From Rebecca billardiae RCC1528 (lineage: Eukaryota; Protista; Haptophyta), in NCBI GenBank assembly GCA_965240325.2, contig OZ251222.1, positions 4,650,001-4,714,000 of the forward strand: a stretch of DNA of 64,000 nt. Direction: 5' to 3'. Each line of letters begins with the position of its first letter. Position 1 is the first letter of the stretch. The notes under the pieces were generated by a model. That model saw only the letters and a list, made by a program, of their open reading frames with translations. It did not search any database and had not been told where the DNA came from. Made by a program: the position numbers and the translations under genes. Shown piece after piece: positions 55,783 to 63,134 of the stretch.

Positions 55783-57712
55783 CCAGGTCGTTCCCCCTGC
55801 ACTGGGAATCCGCGGTTTGGACATACGAGAAAAACAGCCGCAGGACGCACCCGTCGCTACCCGCGAATAAGATTTTCAGGTCTCGCGGGTGCGGATGTGC
55901 GTCAATCGATGAGCTGGTCTCGCAATCCCAAAATTGAGCCGCAATGAGATAGATGGTGCAGGGAGCCCCCGGCCGGTGGCGGCTCGGCAGGCGAGGGCCG
56001 ACCAAATCTTGACCTTTGCCCTCGGCGGCAGGGCGGGCAGGCGAAGGCGGCCGAGCGCCGTTGGCGGCCGGCGCGCCCGGGGCACGGCGCTGCGGGCGCG
56101 GATGTGCTCGCGGAGCCGGCTTGCGTGGACAGGCTGTTGCGGGAGAGTATATGGCGCCCTCCTGCGCCGCGCGTCTCGCGCCACGCCTCTTTTCGCCGCG
56201 GCTCAGGGCAGCGCGCACGCGCGCGCCGCCTCGGAGGCCAGGGCCGCACCGTGCCCGCGCCGCAGCCGCAACCGCGCGCGCGCCGTGCGCGGCGTGGTCG
56301 GGAAGGAACGGGGGGTGCTGCCGGGCGAGATGACGACATCATGTGCGCACGCCATGCCGCCCCGCGGCGCCGCGAAAGGGCACGATAACGGATCCGCACA
56401 GCTGTTGACGAGTGCTGATTTCTTGTCGTGCCTGAAGCCAGACCTCGGAGCTCGAAGAAGATGATGAAAGTGCATCCGCGCGAGGAAAGCGTCGCACCCA
56501 GCACTTCTACACGACCACGTGGTGATGAACATTCATGTAAGAGTATCCCGCGTGCCCGCTTGGCACTGTTCTGTGTCTCAATGATCGTCCCGGCAAGGGT
56601 CACGACCGCGAGGCCGTGGCACACCATTCATAGTGTGACAACTCGAAGAGGCGTGCAAACGGACCAGCGACACGCTCGGCAAGGCGTGGCGGGGCGGCAT
56701 GGCGTGCGCACATGATATCGCCATCTCGCCCGGCAGCCGTGCCCGTTCCTTCCCGACCACGCCGCGCACGGCGCGCACGCGGTCGGCTGCGGCGCAGGCA
56801 AGGCTGGCCTTGAGGCGACGCGCCGCGTGCGCGCTGCCCTGAGCCGAGGCGAAAGAGGCGTGGCGCAAGTCGCGCGGTGCAGGAGGGCGGCAGATACTCT
56901 CCCACAACAGCCCGTCCACGCACGCCGGCTCCGCAAGCACATCCGCGCCCGCAGCGCCCTGGCCCGGGCGCGGCCCCCGGCAGCGGTCACGACCGCGAGG
57001 CCGCGTGCACACCATTTGTGACAACTCGAAGAGGCGTGCAAATGGACCAGCGACACGCTCGGCAAGGCGTGGCGGGGCGGCATGGCGTGCGCACATGATA
57101 TCGCCATCTCGCCCGGCAGCCGCGCCCGTTCCTTCCCGACCACGCCGCGCACGGCGCGCGCGCGGTCGGCTGCGGCGCAGGCCGAAGGCTGGCCCCGGAG
57201 GCGGCGCGCGCGTGCGCGCTGCCCTGAGCCGAGGCGAAAGAGGCGTGGCGCAAGTCGCGCGGCGCAGGAGGGCGGCAGATACTCTCCCGCAACAGCCCGT
57301 CCACGCACGCCGGCTCCGCAAGCACATCCGCGCCCCCCAGCGCCGGGCCAGCTGCATCGCACTCGCCGCCCGGCCGCAGGCGCAGGGGGCGGGTCAGAAT
57401 CGGTGCTCCGCACCCGCGGGAGGGCTCCCGCCTCCGCGGTTGCACGCGAAGAACTCATTTCCAGCGCCTCGATTTCGTGAGCGGACTATCGCTGACGAGG
57501 CTGATTACTGCGTTCCACGGCTTTGCCGCGCTCGGGATTTGGGTTCTCTAATGGATGGATGTACTTTCGTCATTTTCAATTGGAAACCTCGATTAGATCG
57601 TTCAAGTGGTCTGATAGAGCAAGCGGAAGAATAAATCTGCGTTGCTATGCCGCGGCCTCGTGCTCTGAATAGTGCGAAACCGCGGATTCCCAGTGCAGGG
57701 GGAACGACCTGG
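55783..57712. mobile_element. Non-autonomous Tc1/mariner-type DNA transposon (1930 bp), perfect 36-bp TIRs, TA target duplication
   Basis: CCAGGTCGTTCCCCCTGCACTGGGAATCCGCGGTTT at 55783-55818 and its exact reverse complement at 57677-57712. TA at 55781-82 and 57713-14. No transposase ORF. Confidence 0.88.
56070..57335. repeat. Internal repeats of the transposon: 387-bp tandem duplication plus one inverted copy
   Basis: ~56598-56985 repeats at ~56985-57335. ~56070-56365 is a diverged reverse complement of the same unit. Confidence 0.9.
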
Positions 57713-57721
57713 TACTTATTA

Positions 57722-57768
<47 letters not shown>
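57722..57768. repeat. (TA)n microsatellite
   Basis: Pure TA run just beyond the right TIR. Confidence 0.97.
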
Positions 57769-57771
<3 letters not shown>

Positions 57772-57850
57772 CATTAATATTTAAGTACAGCACGGCTAGC
57801 CGCTACAGCGCAGCAGCAGCATATTATTATGCTCAGCGCCATCATCACAG

Positions 57851-57922: not shown

Positions 57923-58124
57923 CGAATATATCTCGGCCGGCGAGGAGACAGGAGTCCTGACAGTCCTGGACTCAGTCCACTCCGCTGAGGAGTTCCAGGC
58001 AGTGCGTCAGTGACATTCTGCATATTCAAATCACACCGTCGCGGATCGATGTAGTCCGCGCCGCCTACTGAGTAGTACTAATACTGCTCGGGATCGTCTT
58101 AATTATATTGCCCGACGCGGCGGC

Positions 58125-59588
58125 TCATCTGCTGTCATCATCATCGGCGGCACAATCGTCGCCTCGGCAGCACCCATTGGCTAAGGGGCGTACATTGGCA
58201 GCACTCGCCAGCGACACGCGCCCTGCCACAGCGCGTGTGAGAGCAGCGAAGGCGAGCGCTGCAGCGACCCACGGGCTCGAGCGCACAAACCACGGTGCGA
58301 GCGTGAGCGTGGAGCCTGCGCCAGCCTGGGCCTCTTCTTCGACGAGCAGGTCTACCCCTGCGGCGTCCACGGCATACGAGAGTAGCAGCGCTGCAGCCGT
58401 CATCGCAGCAGAGACGCGCGCGGCCGCAACGCGCGGCGCGGGCGCGGCCGTGCGGGCGGCTCCTGCATCCACGGGCGGACGCCCCGCCCGATCGAGGGGC
58501 GCCTGCCGCAGCGCCGACATGAGCAGGAGGAGGCTCGGCAGGTTGGTAGCGGGTGCGGCGAGTAAGAAGGCGAAGGCGAGGCCCGCGCTCCCGCCCGCCC
58601 GCTGCATCGCTGCGGCGGCGGTGACTGCGGTGTGCTCGCACAGCTGAAGTGGCAGGGAGGCTGCGAGCACAGCCAGCCGCGCAAGCAGCCCGCCCTCGCT
58701 GCCGAGCTCGTGCGGGGCGTTCGGTAGCGACGGCAGCCATCTCATCAGCGCTGCGCTGATGGCAAGCCCTAGCAGCACGGGCGGGAACGTGTCTGCGGCA
58801 CACTGCACTGCGGCGAGCAGCGCCACTCGCAGAGGCGCCAGCGCGCCGCCAGCCCCGGCCAACGCACCTGCCACGCACGTGCGGCGTGCGGGGGCGGGAC
58901 TGGCCGCGCGGACGCTCGCGGGCACGGCGAACCCGGCGGCGACTGCGAGGAGGCCTGCCCCTGCGATCCGCCAGAGCGCCGCCGCTGGGCCCAGGAGCCC
59001 CCACGTGAGCGCGGCGCTGTCGAGACCGGCGGACTGCGAGGCGGTGAGGAACGCCACCACCGCACGCACGGGCACGCCTCCGCGCACGAAGCCCGCGGCG
59101 ACGGGGAGCGCGCCGCACGAGCAGAGCGGGGTGGCGAGCCCAACGAGAGCGCCGCCGACCGGGCCCGCGCCGTGCAGGAACGAGCCCAGCGTCTGCACAG
59201 GGAGCTGCAGCGCCTCCAGCGCCGCAGTCAGGAGTGTCCCGAGGACGATCCAGGGCATCGCTTTCTCCACCTCGGACTGGAGCTCGGCCAGGAAGGTCGG
59301 CGGCCTGTAGTCGGGGTTGTCGATCAGGGGAGCCGACCACTCGTACAGCGGATTCTCGACGAACGGCGCTTCCCACGGGCCGTCGTCTTCGTCGCTCCAC
59401 CCTTCGGGCTTTGCGAGCTCGCTCGCGTCGGGAATGAGGCGCGGCTCGCCTTTGGCGTCGAACTCTGGTGGCACCGCGGCCGGGTCGGGAATGTGCCGCA
59501 GCTTTGCGAGCCGCGCCGCCTTCTCGCAGCAAGACTCGTGGGCCGCAGCGCAGGGCAACAGCACGGCCAGCAAGAGCGCGTGCTTCAT
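58125..59588 (-). CDS. DUF318/ArsP-family permease with signal peptide and calreticulin/calnexin P-domain repeats (487 aa)
   Basis: Signal peptide MKHALLLAVLLPCAAA. P-arm-like IPDPAAVPPEFD..IPD..LAKPEGWSDEDDGPWEAPFVENPLYEWSAPLIDNPDY. Permease motifs GLATPLCSCGALP, AFLTAS, PLQLCEH and AFLLAAPATN. Cys pairs at both ends. Confidence 0.85.
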   Translation of the reverse strand: MKHALLLAVLLPCAAAHESCCEKAARLAKLRHIPDPAAVPPEFDAKGEPRLIPDASELAKPEGWSDEDDGPWEAPFVENPLYEWSAPLIDNPDYRPPTFLAELQSEVEKAMPWIVLGTLLTAALEALQLPVQTLGSFLHGAGPVGGALVGLATPLCSCGALPVAAGFVRGGVPVRAVVAFLTASQSAGLDSAALTWGLLGPAAALWRIAGAGLLAVAAGFAVPASVRAASPAPARRTCVAGALAGAGGALAPLRVALLAAVQCAADTFPPVLLGLAISAALMRWLPSLPNAPHELGSEGGLLARLAVLAASLPLQLCEHTAVTAAAAMQRAGGSAGLAFAFLLAAPATNLPSLLLLMSALRQAPLDRAGRPPVDAGAARTAAPAPRVAAARVSAAMTAAALLLSYAVDAAGVDLLVEEEAQAGAGSTLTLAPWFVRSSPWVAAALAFAALTRAVAGRVSLASAANVRPLANGCCRGDDCAADDDDSR

Positions 59589-60077
59589 GAGAGGCGCGGC
59601 CGGGCCGAGTATGGTACCACGTTCGTGTTGTTCGTGAGCCGGATCTCCAGGATTCTGACGGTCGTGTACTCGCGTAAGCGCGCATACAATGACACTAGCA
59701 TAGTAACAAACTGTACAATTAACATCGCCCCTGCTGAATACTTGTACGGTTGGCAGGATGGCGCTCGTCACTACTTGGGCGACGCGAGGGCCAAGCCTGG
59801 CGCAACGCGCCCAAGGCCGCATACGAGCCTGACGGCCGTGCGCGGGCGCCTCGTGGTGGAGAAGACCCGGTGGCAGCATTCGCGCCGCTTTGTCGACGCC
59901 CTCGCCCCCCCGGCCGGCGGCCCCCGGTTGACCGCACGGAGACCTGCGCTGTGCATGCTCGGCTCGCAGACCGCGACGTCGCGGACAAAGACAGGAGAGC
60001 ACTGAACAGGCGTGGGCACGCGCGCACCGCGCAGCGCTCCTCCCGACCTCAGAGGCGCCGCTCGGCGAGAGTGGCGC

Positions 60078-60599
60078 TCAGAGGTGCTGGTTCCAGTAGT
60101 CGTCTTCAGTCGCCGCCGCGATCTTGCGCGTCCTCTCCGGGGTCGCACCGTCCTGCTCGGCGCGGCCAAGCACCTCGTCGCGGATCTCGCCTTGCCAGCT
60201 GCCCATCTGCCGATGCCGCTCCCAGTACGCAGCGTCGCCGATCGGCACGGTGCCGGCCTCGGGCTTGGGCTGCGGCGCAGCGGCGCCCGAGCCGGCAGCA
60301 CCGGCGCCCGGGGCGGCTGCAGGCGCCGAGGTCGCCGCCGTCCCCTCCTCGCGCAGGTACTCCTGGTGCGCCGCTGCGAGCATCGCCATCTCGGCCGTCC
60401 CGACACTCGGCTCGCCCGCCTTGGGCGGTCGCGAAATCGCCGTCTCGCGGTCAGCGGTGCGCTCGAGCCTCTCGAAGCGCTCGAGCAGGTCGTCCACTCG
60501 GCCCTCCAGCCGGAGTCGCGCGAGGCGCTCGGCGTCGACGGCGCCCCGCAGCTCGAGCACCTCGGCGCGCAGCCTGTTCACCTCGTCCTGCTGCGCCAT
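60078..60599 (-). CDS. Hypothetical coiled-coil protein (173 aa), divergent from the gag-like ORF
   Basis: ATG start, heptad-like N-terminus (EVNRLRAEVLELRGAVDAERLARLRLEGRVDDLLERFERLE), Ala/Pro linker and Trp-containing helical C-terminus. Confidence 0.55.
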   Translation of the reverse strand: MAQQDEVNRLRAEVLELRGAVDAERLARLRLEGRVDDLLERFERLERTADRETAISRPPKAGEPSVGTAEMAMLAAAHQEYLREEGTAATSAPAAAPGAGAAGSGAAAPQPKPEAGTVPIGDAAYWERHRQMGSWQGEIRDEVLGRAEQDGATPERTRKIAAATEDDYWNQHL

Positions 60600-61136
60600 C
60601 CGGGCACCGCGCGCGTCGAGCGTCCCGTTCGCGCGCGATCGGCAGTGCTTCGCGGAGGCGGGAAGGCGACGACGGGGAAGCGGACGATTTCGGGGCGATG
60701 GCCGACGCGACGGGAGTGGCGGGTTTGGCAGTCTGCGGCGGTTATCGCGTTATGACTGCCGGCGCCGCTTCGCCGCCGCCCGATACCCTCCTCCAGCGCC
60801 CCTCCGACCGCACCCCCGCCCGGACGGGCTCGGAGCTCGGAGCTCGCAGCGCGCCCCCGGACAGCGTTCCGAGCGTGTGGCAGCTCGCTTTTGGCGCGGA
60901 CCGCAGAAAAGTGAGCGCGCGCCGGGAGTTGACGGGCAGTGACCGGCTTTGGCGAACAGGAGCGAGTTTCGCCCAGCAGCCGTCCGCTTTCCCGCCCGAC
61001 CGCACGGCGCACCTCGCCCTGCCCGACCGCCGACCGGACCGCCGCCCGACTACCAAACCCAGCCGACGGGCCACGCTTGGCGCCGAGCAGCCGCACGGAC
61101 AACCAGCTGCGCTCCTCCGCCTCCCGCCGTCCCGAC

Positions 61137-63134
61137 ATGGCGGTGCCTGCAGTCCAACGCGTGTCGCGGCGCCGCGCGGCGGCAGCGGCCGTCGTCAACC
61201 AGCAGGTCCTCGGCGCTCGTGGGCGCGGCGGCGGGGGCCGCGGTCGGGGCCGGGGTGGGCGCGCGGGTGGCCGCCAAGCAAGTACCCTGCCGCCTGCCGC
61301 GCCGGTGCAGCAGCTCGGCCCGCTGCCGGTCCAGCCGCCGCCCGCGACCGCGCCGGCGGCCGGTGCCAGGACGACGGCGGGGGCTGCTCCCGCGCCCGCG
61401 CCCGGGCGAGCGGCCGGCGCCGCGTCGACGGCGGCTGCTGCGCAGCCGCAGGCACCCGCCCCCCCGGCCGCGCCCGCTGGCCAGCCGGGCATTCCGACTG
61501 GCCTACCACCCGACCTCGCGAACAGCCTCACTGACTTCCTTCGCGGCGTCCACGGCAACGGTGCGGGTGATGGGGCGGTCGGTGGCCACTCGGGCGCGCC
61601 GCCCGCCGACGGCGCACCGACGGGGCCCACCTCTGTCCCGCCGCCGCGGCCGCCGCCCTGGGGCGTCCGGCCGGCGCCGGACGCGGCGGCGCCCCTCGCC
61701 CCGCCCAGCTCGCTCGTGCCGCATCCCGTCCCCTTCGGTGGGGCTGGCTTCCTTGCGGGGGCCGCGCACGAGTTCGCGAACGCTTGCGCGCTCGCGGGCG
61801 GCGCGGGCGGCCAACTCCGGGGGACCGGGGGGGGGAGGCCGAGCTTCCCGGCTCGCGGGGCGTTTTCGTCCATGCGGCGCGGCTTGGGCGTGCCGGCGAA
61901 CGCGGCGGGTTCGGTCGTCTGGGAGTCCTTCAACATGGCTGAGGTGCCGCACGCGCAGGTCGATCGAAGCGTCTACTTCAACACGAAGGGCGAGCTGCGC
62001 GAGGCCTACCAGCTCCTCAGCCAGCTCCACTTCATACTGCTCGTCGAGCAGGCCGAGGGCTTCTGCACGCGCGCGGGTGACGCCGAGGTGCTGCGCGAGT
62101 ACAGGGGCTTCGTGATGCAGCTCGCTGAGGCGCGCGACTGGCGGGCGGCGGCACAGTTCCACTCTGAATTCTCGGAGAGCCTCGGGCGGGTGCTCGACGC
62201 GCGCTCGGGCGTGGCGGCGCTGGTGGCGAGCATCGGTGGCGGGCGGGAGCCGTTCTTCGACTGCTACAAGAACGACAACCCCTTCCATGACAAGTTTGCC
62301 ATGCGCCCGCTGATGCGCGTCTACGGTGGGAGCATGCCGATTCCGCCGCCGCCGCCGTCGCTGATGGTGCAGGACCTGTCGCCCGGCTTTGGCGGGGCGG
62401 CGCCCGGCGCAGCGGAGTGGGGCTGCTGGTCGTGGTCGGCGCCGATGCAGGTGGCGCCGCACGGGCCCGTGCCGCTCTCGTTCACGTGCGCACCCTCGGC
62501 AGGATCGTCCTGGGCGCCCCGCCCGGCGCTGTGCCCGCCGGCGCCGTACCCGCAGGGGCTGCAGGCGGCAGCGCCGGCCCCGCCGGCGCCGCCGGTACAG
62601 GGGGCGCAGCCCGGGCCCGCGCCGCTCGCGCTCACGTACGTGCCGCCGGCGGGTTCGGCCTGGGCGCCCGGGCCGGCGCCGTACACACCGGCGCCGTACC
62701 CGCCGGGGCCGCAGGCGCCGCCTCCCGGCCCGCCGCCCCCGCCGCCAGGCGGGCCGCCGCGGACGCTGCCGCAACCGTTCCCGGGCGCCGCCTCTGCGGG
62801 GGGCGTGCCGCCGCTGACGCTGGCGCGCGAGCTGGCGCGGTACGGGGGTGTGTGCGACGCGAGCGGGCGGCCCCTGCTCTCGGAGGCCAACCACCGCGTC
62901 TTCCGCGCGCACGGCTGCCTACGGCACCAGCTATTCGGCGACTGCTCCGCGGCGGCGTGCCCGCTGTTCGCCGCGTACCGGTCGGCCGGCGGCCAACCGT
63001 CTGCGCAGATGCAGCACAACTTCACGCTCGCGCACGCCACCAAGTGCGCTCTGTGCGGGAGCCTTGGCCACTTGGCCGGCGCGCACGCTGAGACAGCGCA
63101 CGTGCAGCAGCACACGGGCGTGGGCCGCGTCTAG
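61137..63134 (+). CDS. Gag-like ORF of a DIRS/Ngaro tyrosine-recombinase retrotransposon (665 aa)
   Basis: Pro/Ala-rich flanks around YRGFVMQLAEARDWRAAAQFHSEF, resembling the DIRS/Ngaro gag Y..I..LA...W....YD..FR pattern. C-terminal Cys/His cluster CLRHQLFGDCSAAAC...HATKCALCGSLGHLAGAH. Confidence 0.65.
   Translation: MAVPAVQRVSRRRAAAAAVVNQQVLGARGRGGGGRGRGRGGRAGGRQASTLPPAAPVQQLGPLPVQPPPATAPAAGARTTAGAAPAPAPGRAAGAASTAAAAQPQAPAPPAAPAGQPGIPTGLPPDLANSLTDFLRGVHGNGAGDGAVGGHSGAPPADGAPTGPTSVPPPRPPPWGVRPAPDAAAPLAPPSSLVPHPVPFGGAGFLAGAAHEFANACALAGGAGGQLRGTGGGRPSFPARGAFSSMRRGLGVPANAAGSVVWESFNMAEVPHAQVDRSVYFNTKGELREAYQLLSQLHFILLVEQAEGFCTRAGDAEVLREYRGFVMQLAEARDWRAAAQFHSEFSESLGRVLDARSGVAALVASIGGGREPFFDCYKNDNPFHDKFAMRPLMRVYGGSMPIPPPPPSLMVQDLSPGFGGAAPGAAEWGCWSWSAPMQVAPHGPVPLSFTCAPSAGSSWAPRPALCPPAPYPQGLQAAAPAPPAPPVQGAQPGPAPLALTYVPPAGSAWAPGPAPYTPAPYPPGPQAPPPGPPPPPPGGPPRTLPQPFPGAASAGGVPPLTLARELARYGGVCDASGRPLLSEANHRVFRAHGCLRHQLFGDCSAAACPLFAAYRSAGGQPSAQMQHNFTLAHATKCALCGSLGHLAGAHAETAHVQQHTGVGRV

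Follow-up and report, generated by a model that had tools for sequence, protein, structure and literature searches.

A calreticulin-type P-arm joined to an SO_0444-like permease in a conserved algal protein family, with a possible role in metal transport in the secretory pathway

The P-domain found in calnexin, calreticulin and calmegin (PF00262; structures 1jhn, 1hhn, 5v90 and 3ici) is a hairpin arm of type-1 and type-2 repeats that is attached to a chaperone body. Its Met-Asp-Gly (MDG) tip is conserved across all members of the calnexin/calreticulin family and is essential for the binding of ERp57, cyclophilin B and ERp29, with the Asp forming key salt bridges and the Met occupying a hydrophobic pocket (PMC7687155). 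The ArsP permeases are a family with a described internal repeat, and are listed in the TCDB-based literature as bacterial and archaeal only (PMC7176098). Their signature is Cys-Ser-Cys (CSC), which reads USC in selenoprotein members (preprint 10.1101/2022.07.06.499078). Within this family (TCDB 2.A.119), SO_0444 of Shewanella oneidensis (NF033936) sits behind a ZntR-like regulator, and an SO_0444 mutant fails to grow in ZnSO4 or CuCl2, a defect that was complemented; Cu/Zn tolerance is known only for the Shewanella protein (PMC3219624). In Nitratiruptor, the genes with the strongest induction by Cd and Cu include an SO_0444 homologue (PMC10092412). Here we describe a gene of the haptophyte Rebecca billardiae RCC1528, at positions 58125–59588 of a stretch of 64,000 nucleotides (the window; assembly GCA_965240325.2, contig OZ251222.1, positions 4,650,001 to 4,714,000), whose product joins a P-arm to a permease that resembles SO_0444. 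The fusion is real, a single co-translated protein, and it represents a widespread conserved algal family and not a singular chimera.

The gene is a single uninterrupted, intronless open reading frame (ORF) of 487 amino acids plus stop on the minus strand, from the ATG at 59588 to the stop codon at 58125–58127. Although the mechanical ORF can be read on to a GTG at 60002, still further upstream, all of 85 homologues begin at the signal peptide, which supports ATG 59588 as the start. The third-position GC content (GC3) of the coding sequence is 0.81. An independent contig (L001, read set ERR14847151) is 100% identical over window positions 58082–60691, stop codon included. From the N- to the C-terminus, the protein consists of a signal peptide, the sequence H-E-S-C-C, the P-arm, the ArsP_1 permease, a ninth helix and an acidic tail with two adjacent cysteines (CC). 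The original prediction of one intronless ORF at 58125–59588 with signal peptide, HESCC, arm and permease is thereby confirmed. The features are as follows, and the coordinates of the four short motifs (HESCC, PLCSCG, PLQLCEH and CC) were checked.

58125–59588, minus strand: complete intronless coding sequence, supported by end-to-end alignment with homologues and by the identical Logan contig L001
59541–59588, minus strand: predicted signal peptide (residues 1–16), read from the sequence, with A-x-A cleavage before His17
59526–59540, minus strand: mature N-terminal H-E-S-C-C, a putative luminal metal-acceptor site, from family conservation
59301–59498, minus strand: P-arm (residues 31–96), a two-module calnexin/calreticulin-type hairpin, from Pfam, PDB matches, AlphaFold2 (AF2) and Foldseek
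59370–59399, minus strand: arm tip W-S-D-E-D-D-G-P-W-E, aligned with the calreticulin tip W-D-E-E-M-D-G-E-W-E, Met being replaced by Asp
58503–59279, minus strand: ArsP_1/SO_0444-type permease core (residues 104–362) of two homologous halves, from Pfam, NCBIfam, profile and hhalign
59112–59129, minus strand: PLCSCG motif at a helix break of the first half, invariant (85/85)
58632–58652, minus strand: PLQLCEH motif at a helix break of the second half (Cys in 84, Glu in 85 and His in 81 of 85)
58194–58295, minus strand: extra (ninth) C-terminal transmembrane helix (residues 432–465), predicted to return the tail to the cytosol, from AF2 and the Atlas structural match
58128–58193, minus strand: putative cytosolic tail with the vicinal CC (58167–58172) and without K(X)KXX, from the family alignment

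In a word-indexed protein search, 129 relatives were retrieved. PF00262 and PF03773 stand in one chain in more than 90 of them, with 35–65% identity over nearly the full length, and BLASTP gave 65% identity to P0002 and 64% to P0003. Named sources include the diatoms Corethron pennatum, Cylindrotheca closterium and Nitzschia, the raphidophyte Heterosigma akashiwo and the haptophyte Phaeocystis antarctica. Several relatives are complete ORFs of MMETSP transcriptomes, and since these span both parts, the arm is translated together with the permease in those species at least, as the prediction of a single translated chain required. Below, conservation counts refer to an alignment of 85 members and tip counts to 93 arm-bearing members. 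Full-text literature searches found no published account of a calreticulin-arm/ArsP_1 permease fusion, so that the claim of an undescribed chimera stands in this respect, while its singularity does not. Both parts are of already known kinds, and the fused sequences sit unannotated in public collections.

The arm matched the Calreticulin profile PF00262 over residues 31–95 (41.5 bits, 1.1e-10, cut-off 25), spanning profile positions 238–308 of 369. Because this match covers the P-domain part of the profile only, the lectin domain is absent, as had been predicted, and the gap of about 14 residues between the signal peptide and the arm holds no globular glycan-binding domain. Lacking the lectin domain, the algal protein would be without glycan reading. 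The hairpin contains two type-1 and two type-2 repeats (sought as IxDPxxxKPxDWD and GxWxxxxIxNP), and the location given for them at the outset, 59307–59492, is correct and corresponds to residues 33–94. Only the distal of the two modules is fully canonical, however; the proximal type-1 repeat is degenerate and without the K-P-x-x-W core. In a PDB sequence search, residues 33–95 aligned with the P-domains of calnexin (1jhn) and calreticulin (1hhn), and also with the tip peptides 1k91, 5v90 and 3ici, which were crystallised with ERp29 and cyclophilin B. The AF2 model of the hairpin has a predicted local distance difference test (pLDDT) score of 94–98, with a Foldseek probability of 1.00 to both 1jhn and 7qpd_C.

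The algal arm thus shares with the calnexin and calreticulin arms the type-1/type-2 hairpin, the distal K-P...W/G-x-W core, an acidic tip with Asp-Gly and, by inference, a location in the lumen of the endoplasmic reticulum (ER). On the other hand, it is built of two modules where they have three or four, and it is attached to a polytopic transporter, sitting immediately ahead of the first membrane helix, whereas the known arms are attached to a chaperone body. The tips also differ. The family tip, W-D-D-E-D-D-G-x-W-E, is nearly invariant: W64, D69, G70 and W72 are kept in 80–83 of the 85 aligned members, the Asp-Gly pair in 82 and 83. The tip triplet is DDG in 83 of the 93 arm-bearing members, EDG in seven, FDG in two and NDG in one, and MDG in none. 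Judged from these alignments, the tip is under strong constraint, yet differs from the canonical docking motif. Docking of a partner with a basic patch is plausible. The proposed docking of an ERp57-type disulfide isomerase retains the conserved Asp-Gly, but the tip is Asp-Asp-Gly, never MDG, and the proposal proceeds by analogy only; docking of a protein disulfide isomerase (PDI) specifically appears doubtful.

The permease matched Pfam ArsP_1 (PF03773) over residues 104–362 with 68.9 bits (5.3e-19), above the membership threshold of 32.3, and the family scan therefore recovered both expected domains above cut-off. Its two halves align in register (hhalign E 0.005), and when bacterial permeases were compared with the family profile, their second halves hit its first repeat, the domain E-values reaching down to 1e-9. 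The protein thus has the two homologous halves and the Cys-Ser-Cys signature of ArsP_1/DUF318 permeases. In addition to PLCSCG and PLQLCEH, two further motifs are highly conserved: Q185, G188, D190 and S191 of SQSAGLDS, and P346 and N349 of APATN, are kept in 85/85.

The original prediction had named a DUF318/ArsP permease, with organoarsenicals or metals as the substrates of that family. The family assignment is borne out by the Pfam match, and the sequence comparisons refine it to the SO_0444 Cu/Zn-efflux type, as opposed to the organoarsenical ArsP type of ars operons. The best NCBIfam match was the SO_0444 family Cu/Zn efflux transporter NF033936, at 91.4 bits, which is far below the equivalog cut-off of 300; for this reason the algal permease is a relative of SO_0444 and not a member in NCBI's sense. 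Scored with the profile of the algal permeases, the SO_0444-type protein reached 138 bits in a single alignment from end to end, and ars-type permeases 47–90 bits. A plasmid tblastn with the Ala-rich permease of the window found no match, while the less biased diatom member P0088 matched 89 plasmid-borne prokaryotic records. The best E-value among these belonged to an Aureibacter protein annotated as SO_0444 family, with ArsP_1 and a C-terminal HMA domain. Its PLCSCG is identical to the algal motif, whereas ten ars-operon permeases have PFCSCS, and the Cys of PLQLCEH is also conserved in it. These matches uphold the prediction of a metal(loid) transporter with Cys motifs.

The predicted structure points in the same direction. 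Its best match was a bacterial Atlas cluster named SO_0444 Cu/Zn efflux, 95% of whose members carry HMA, with template modelling (TM) scores of 0.61/0.64 over residues 100–486, the ninth helix included. The CxxC of the bacterial HMA aligns exactly at the algal CC tail, but the HMA fold itself is absent from the algal protein. The combination that marks the SO_0444 type, namely PLCSCG, a further helix at the C-terminal end and, behind it, a cytoplasmic metal-binding element, is thus found in the algal family, together with the second-half Cys and the two-repeat core. The algal proteins differ from SO_0444 in being eukaryotic, in their signal peptide, luminal HESCC and N-terminal P-arm, in the short CC tail that replaces a folded HMA, in QLCEH instead of YICATG and, mostly, in an ER-retrieval signal. 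When bacterial and archaeal genome contigs were scanned for the pattern of the family alignment, there were 139 matches, none of which tblastn confirmed, and an Atlas feature search returned only generic bacterial ArsP_1 clusters (0.89).

The ArsP permeases of ars operons share with the algal permease the Pfam family, the CSC signature and the two-repeat core, but they have PFCSCS, no ninth helix or metal-binding tail, and the lower profile scores. A small thioredoxin-family gene and ArsR usually accompany them. In eight of 11 prokaryotic loci (L003, L004, L005, L007, L008, L009, L011 and L012), a small thioredoxin-family gene of 77–115 amino acids, mostly 77–81, directly adjoins the permease, usually in an ars operon that also contains ArsR, ACR3, ArsA, ArsC or rhodanese. 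CxxC is present in seven of the eight small proteins, and the Arenibacter protein has SSCC; they are presumably cytoplasmic, since no signal peptide was seen. The pair is a feature of the PFCSCS ars-type branch; the one SO_0444-type locus that was inspected did not show it. This pairing echoes the idea of an oxidoreductase partner, as a lead and not as support.

The AF2 model of the whole protein has a pLDDT of 83 and a predicted TM score (pTM) of 0.80. Four helix breaks in the model carry PLCSCG, SQSAGLDS, PLQLCEH and APATN. Over 230–290 residues, the predicted fold of residues 100–415 aligned with elevator-type transporters with Z-scores of 5.5–10.8 (Pho90 10.8, ArsB 10.0, the INDY/DiT1 group 8.0–8.8, and TRAP, YdaH, CNT and NaS1 5.5–7.3; remaining rows below 5), values of 8–11 being in a range where helical bundles can match by arrangement alone. 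Foldseek against the PDB gave no permease match at E 0.001 or below. The elevator-type superfamily (ArsB, Pho90, INDY/VcINDY, TRAP-QM and CNT) also has helix-break or hairpin elements that carry conserved motifs, whereas its sequence similarity to the algal permease is undetectable. The likeness is therefore suggestive at the level of the model, and it is unlike the published classification, which places ArsP in the TOG superfamily (PMC7176098).

With regard to topology, the N-terminus looks like a cleavable signal peptide: every homologue starts with a hydrophobic segment that stands immediately ahead of H/G-E/P-S-C-C and has small residues at -1 and -3. The N-terminal CC is kept in 82/85 aligned members, with a His three residues ahead of it in 61/85, and in some members His-rich runs are inserted at the position of HESCC. 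The mean loop charges of the family (luminal N-region -9.5, central loop +2.9, loop 5-6 -1.6 and loop 8-9 -3.7) fit an N-terminus in the lumen with the central loop and the tail in the cytosol. Likewise, the loop ahead of the ninth helix is acidic and the segment after it is basic. A luminal N-terminus with a cytosolic central loop and tail would mean that each half needs a re-entrant element instead of four full spans, and hairpin-containing inverted halves are the arrangement that we prefer on these charges. A simple 4+4+1 topology, in which the broken helices are full spans, was considered and rejected, as it conflicts with the charges of the central loop (+2.9) and loop 5-6 (-1.6).

The C-terminal CC is kept in 82/85 members. 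K(X)KXX is the classic COPI ER-retrieval signal and functions only on a cytosolic tail; the C-terminus reads KKxx or KxKxx in 69/85 members, with Lys at -3 in 78/85. Bacterial HMA domains are cytoplasmic, so that the side of the tail agrees between the algal and the bacterial proteins. Together with the signal peptide, the K(X)KXX endings bear out the predicted secretory-pathway location. The C-terminus of the window copy had been described as ending on its cysteine motif; the vicinal CC is indeed present at 58167–58172, but the protein ends GCCRGDDCAADDDDSR. The two nearest relatives end KKTE and KKFD. A frameshift or small 3' intron that would restore K(X)KXX in the window copy was looked for and none was evident; the +1 frame at the 3' end of the gene reads DEPPRRAI and then stops.

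In a tree of the permease part, rooted on four bacterial proteins by a quick method and with long outgroup branches, the algal family forms one clade whose deepest branches are arm-bearing. Five arm-less members are nested in at least three places, and strongly His-rich N-terminal stretches occur in three arm-less placements (P0105, P0112/P0116 and P0118). In P0025 and P0033, only the tip module is deleted, the second I-x-D-P running straight into I-x-N-P, and HESCC and the arm base are kept. From this pattern, the arm looks ancestral and repeatedly swapped for metal-binding sequence, a hint of some link between its role and the handling of metal in the lumen.

Taken together, we favour, with modest confidence, the reading that the algal family consists of endomembrane secondary transporters, most likely of the ER, for a thiol-loving metal cation of the Cu/Zn/Cd class, probably descended from the SO_0444 branch of bacterial Cu/Zn exporters in the ArsP_1 superfamily. 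The metal role is supported by the family-wide conservation of the Cys motifs, by the His-rich luminal inserts and by the His-rich replacements of the arm. With the N-terminus and arm in the lumen and the tail in the cytosol, as in the bacterial exporters, the metal would move from the cytosol into the lumen. The CC of the cytosolic tail may take the metal first and pass it to an intramembrane Cys/Cys/Cys-Glu-His site at the helix breaks, possibly with an elevator-type movement, from which the luminal HESCC at the base of the arm would receive it. The arm would reach about two modules into the lumen with its acidic tip outermost, where it may dock a basic-patch partner, either a foldase (PDI-family, cyclophilin or ERp29-like) or a metal acceptor; alternatively, it may bind cations directly.

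Several points weigh against this reading. The proposed membrane topology is drawn from charge bias and analogy. Transfer of the substrate by homology is loose, because the NF033936 score is so far below its cut-off, and the Z-scores of the fold comparison lie where arrangement alone can produce a match. The Met of the partner-binding motif is replaced at the arm tip. The DDDDSR ending of the window copy is without the retrieval signal, which makes the compartment of this copy less certain. No RNA runs are listed for this genome, and the evidence for co-translation comes from the transcripts of relatives. Finally, adjacent cysteines are also apt ligands for As(III) and Hg(II), and in the ER lumen they might just be oxidised.

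The leading alternative is sequestration of arsenite or organoarsenicals, that is, ArsP-like export of As(III) or methylarsenite from the cytosol into endomembranes with the Cys pairs as As(III) ligands. As(III) is classically bound by vicinal thiols, the permease falls into the Pfam family ArsP_1, and CSC is common to the ArsP-type permeases that stand in ars operons beside ArsR, ACR3, ArsA and ArsC. However, the algal motif is PLCSCG as in SO_0444 and not PFCSCS, the family profile scores the ars type well below the SO_0444 type, and the best structural match carries HMA. The His-rich luminal segments and the Glu-His of PLQLCEH likewise suit Zn, Cu or Ni rather than As, and we consider arsenic export quite unlikely.

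Still somewhat less likely is a transporter that works in reverse, moving metal from the lumen to the cytosol, or one with a thiol substrate such as glutathione or cysteine, the arm then providing a link to oxidative folding. Secondary transporters are reversible, the homologues of the arm recruit PDI-family enzymes (PMC7687155), and the small thioredoxin-family gene at eight of the 11 prokaryotic loci points to thiol-redox chemistry. That pairing belongs to the PFCSCS ars-type branch, though, and was not seen at the one SO_0444-type locus. Moreover, the His-rich segments and the HMA-equivalent tail favour metal cations, and the orientation equals that of the bacterial exporters.

It is very improbable that the arm senses luminal Ca2+ and thereby gates the transporter, as the original prediction had offered in place of isomerase docking. 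The tip has five consecutive acidic residues and is nearly invariant, and older literature gave Ca2+ binding to the P-domain. However, the high-affinity Ca2+ site of calreticulin is formed by Asp328 and backbone carbonyls of the lectin domain, and its low-affinity sites are in the acidic C-tail (PMC7687155); since both regions are absent here, the idea is unsupported. A gene-model artefact, in which two neighbouring genes or a chance GC-rich ORF are read as one, might be suspected from the missing RNA runs and from the 72% GC of the DNA here, which gives many long spurious ORFs in all frames, but it is effectively refuted by the more than 90 homologues that cover both parts in one chain, several as complete transcripts, by the invariant motifs and by the identical sequence in a second read set.

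The surroundings of the gene contain several further elements. Just upstream of the transporter, on the minus strand, an ORF of 173 amino acids (60078–60599) encodes a charged, heptad-like sequence; it is also called as a gene on L001, and no Pfam family is on record for it. L001 matches the window up to 60691 and then continues into unrelated sequence (L001 1–645; junction at window 60691–60692), which could reflect an insertion polymorphism or a repeat at which the assembly branched. Just past this divergence is a long plus-strand ORF (60939–63134), part of a DIRS-type element according to a first reading of the sequence. On the other side, a (TA)n microsatellite of about 25 units (57722–57775) lies about 350 nucleotides downstream of the transporter stop, and at about 56500–57450 there are overlapping ORFs whose near-duplicate translations suggest a local tandem duplication. 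Positions 1–28281 are a 28-kb tandem array of about 121 copies of a 228-bp unit (two 114-bp sub-units) with 86% matches, a GC content of 84% and a GC skew of -0.46. It is rich in GCC/ACC triplets, the opposite strand would read as a Gly-rich repeat, and the array is a satellite or else a very large repetitive coding region.

Because ArsP has been listed as prokaryotic only, the algal family extends this transporter class into eukaryotes. It also shows the P-arm, so far described only within lectin chaperones, reused as a free-standing module of a transporter. This raises the questions of what the arm binds once the Met-Asp-Gly tip has become Asp-Asp-Gly, and why several lineages replaced the arm with His-rich metal-binding stretches. 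The dominant primary producers of the sea are diatoms and haptophytes, and traces of Zn, Cu, Cd and Co shape how they grow. The entry of metals into the secretory pathway, which also leads to the complex plastid, is poorly known, and the family provides a concrete, conserved candidate with testable residues. A bolder proposal, which we regard as unlikely as it stands, is that the family forms a dedicated metal-loading station of the ER and the chloroplast-ER continuum in red-lineage algae, where release at HESCC would be physically coupled to a foldase or metal acceptor recruited by the arm. If true, this would be the first use of a P-arm outside the lectin chaperones and a new principle, transporter-tethered cofactor insertion, and it would matter for the way in which diatoms and haptophytes distribute scarce Zn, Cu, Cd and Co.

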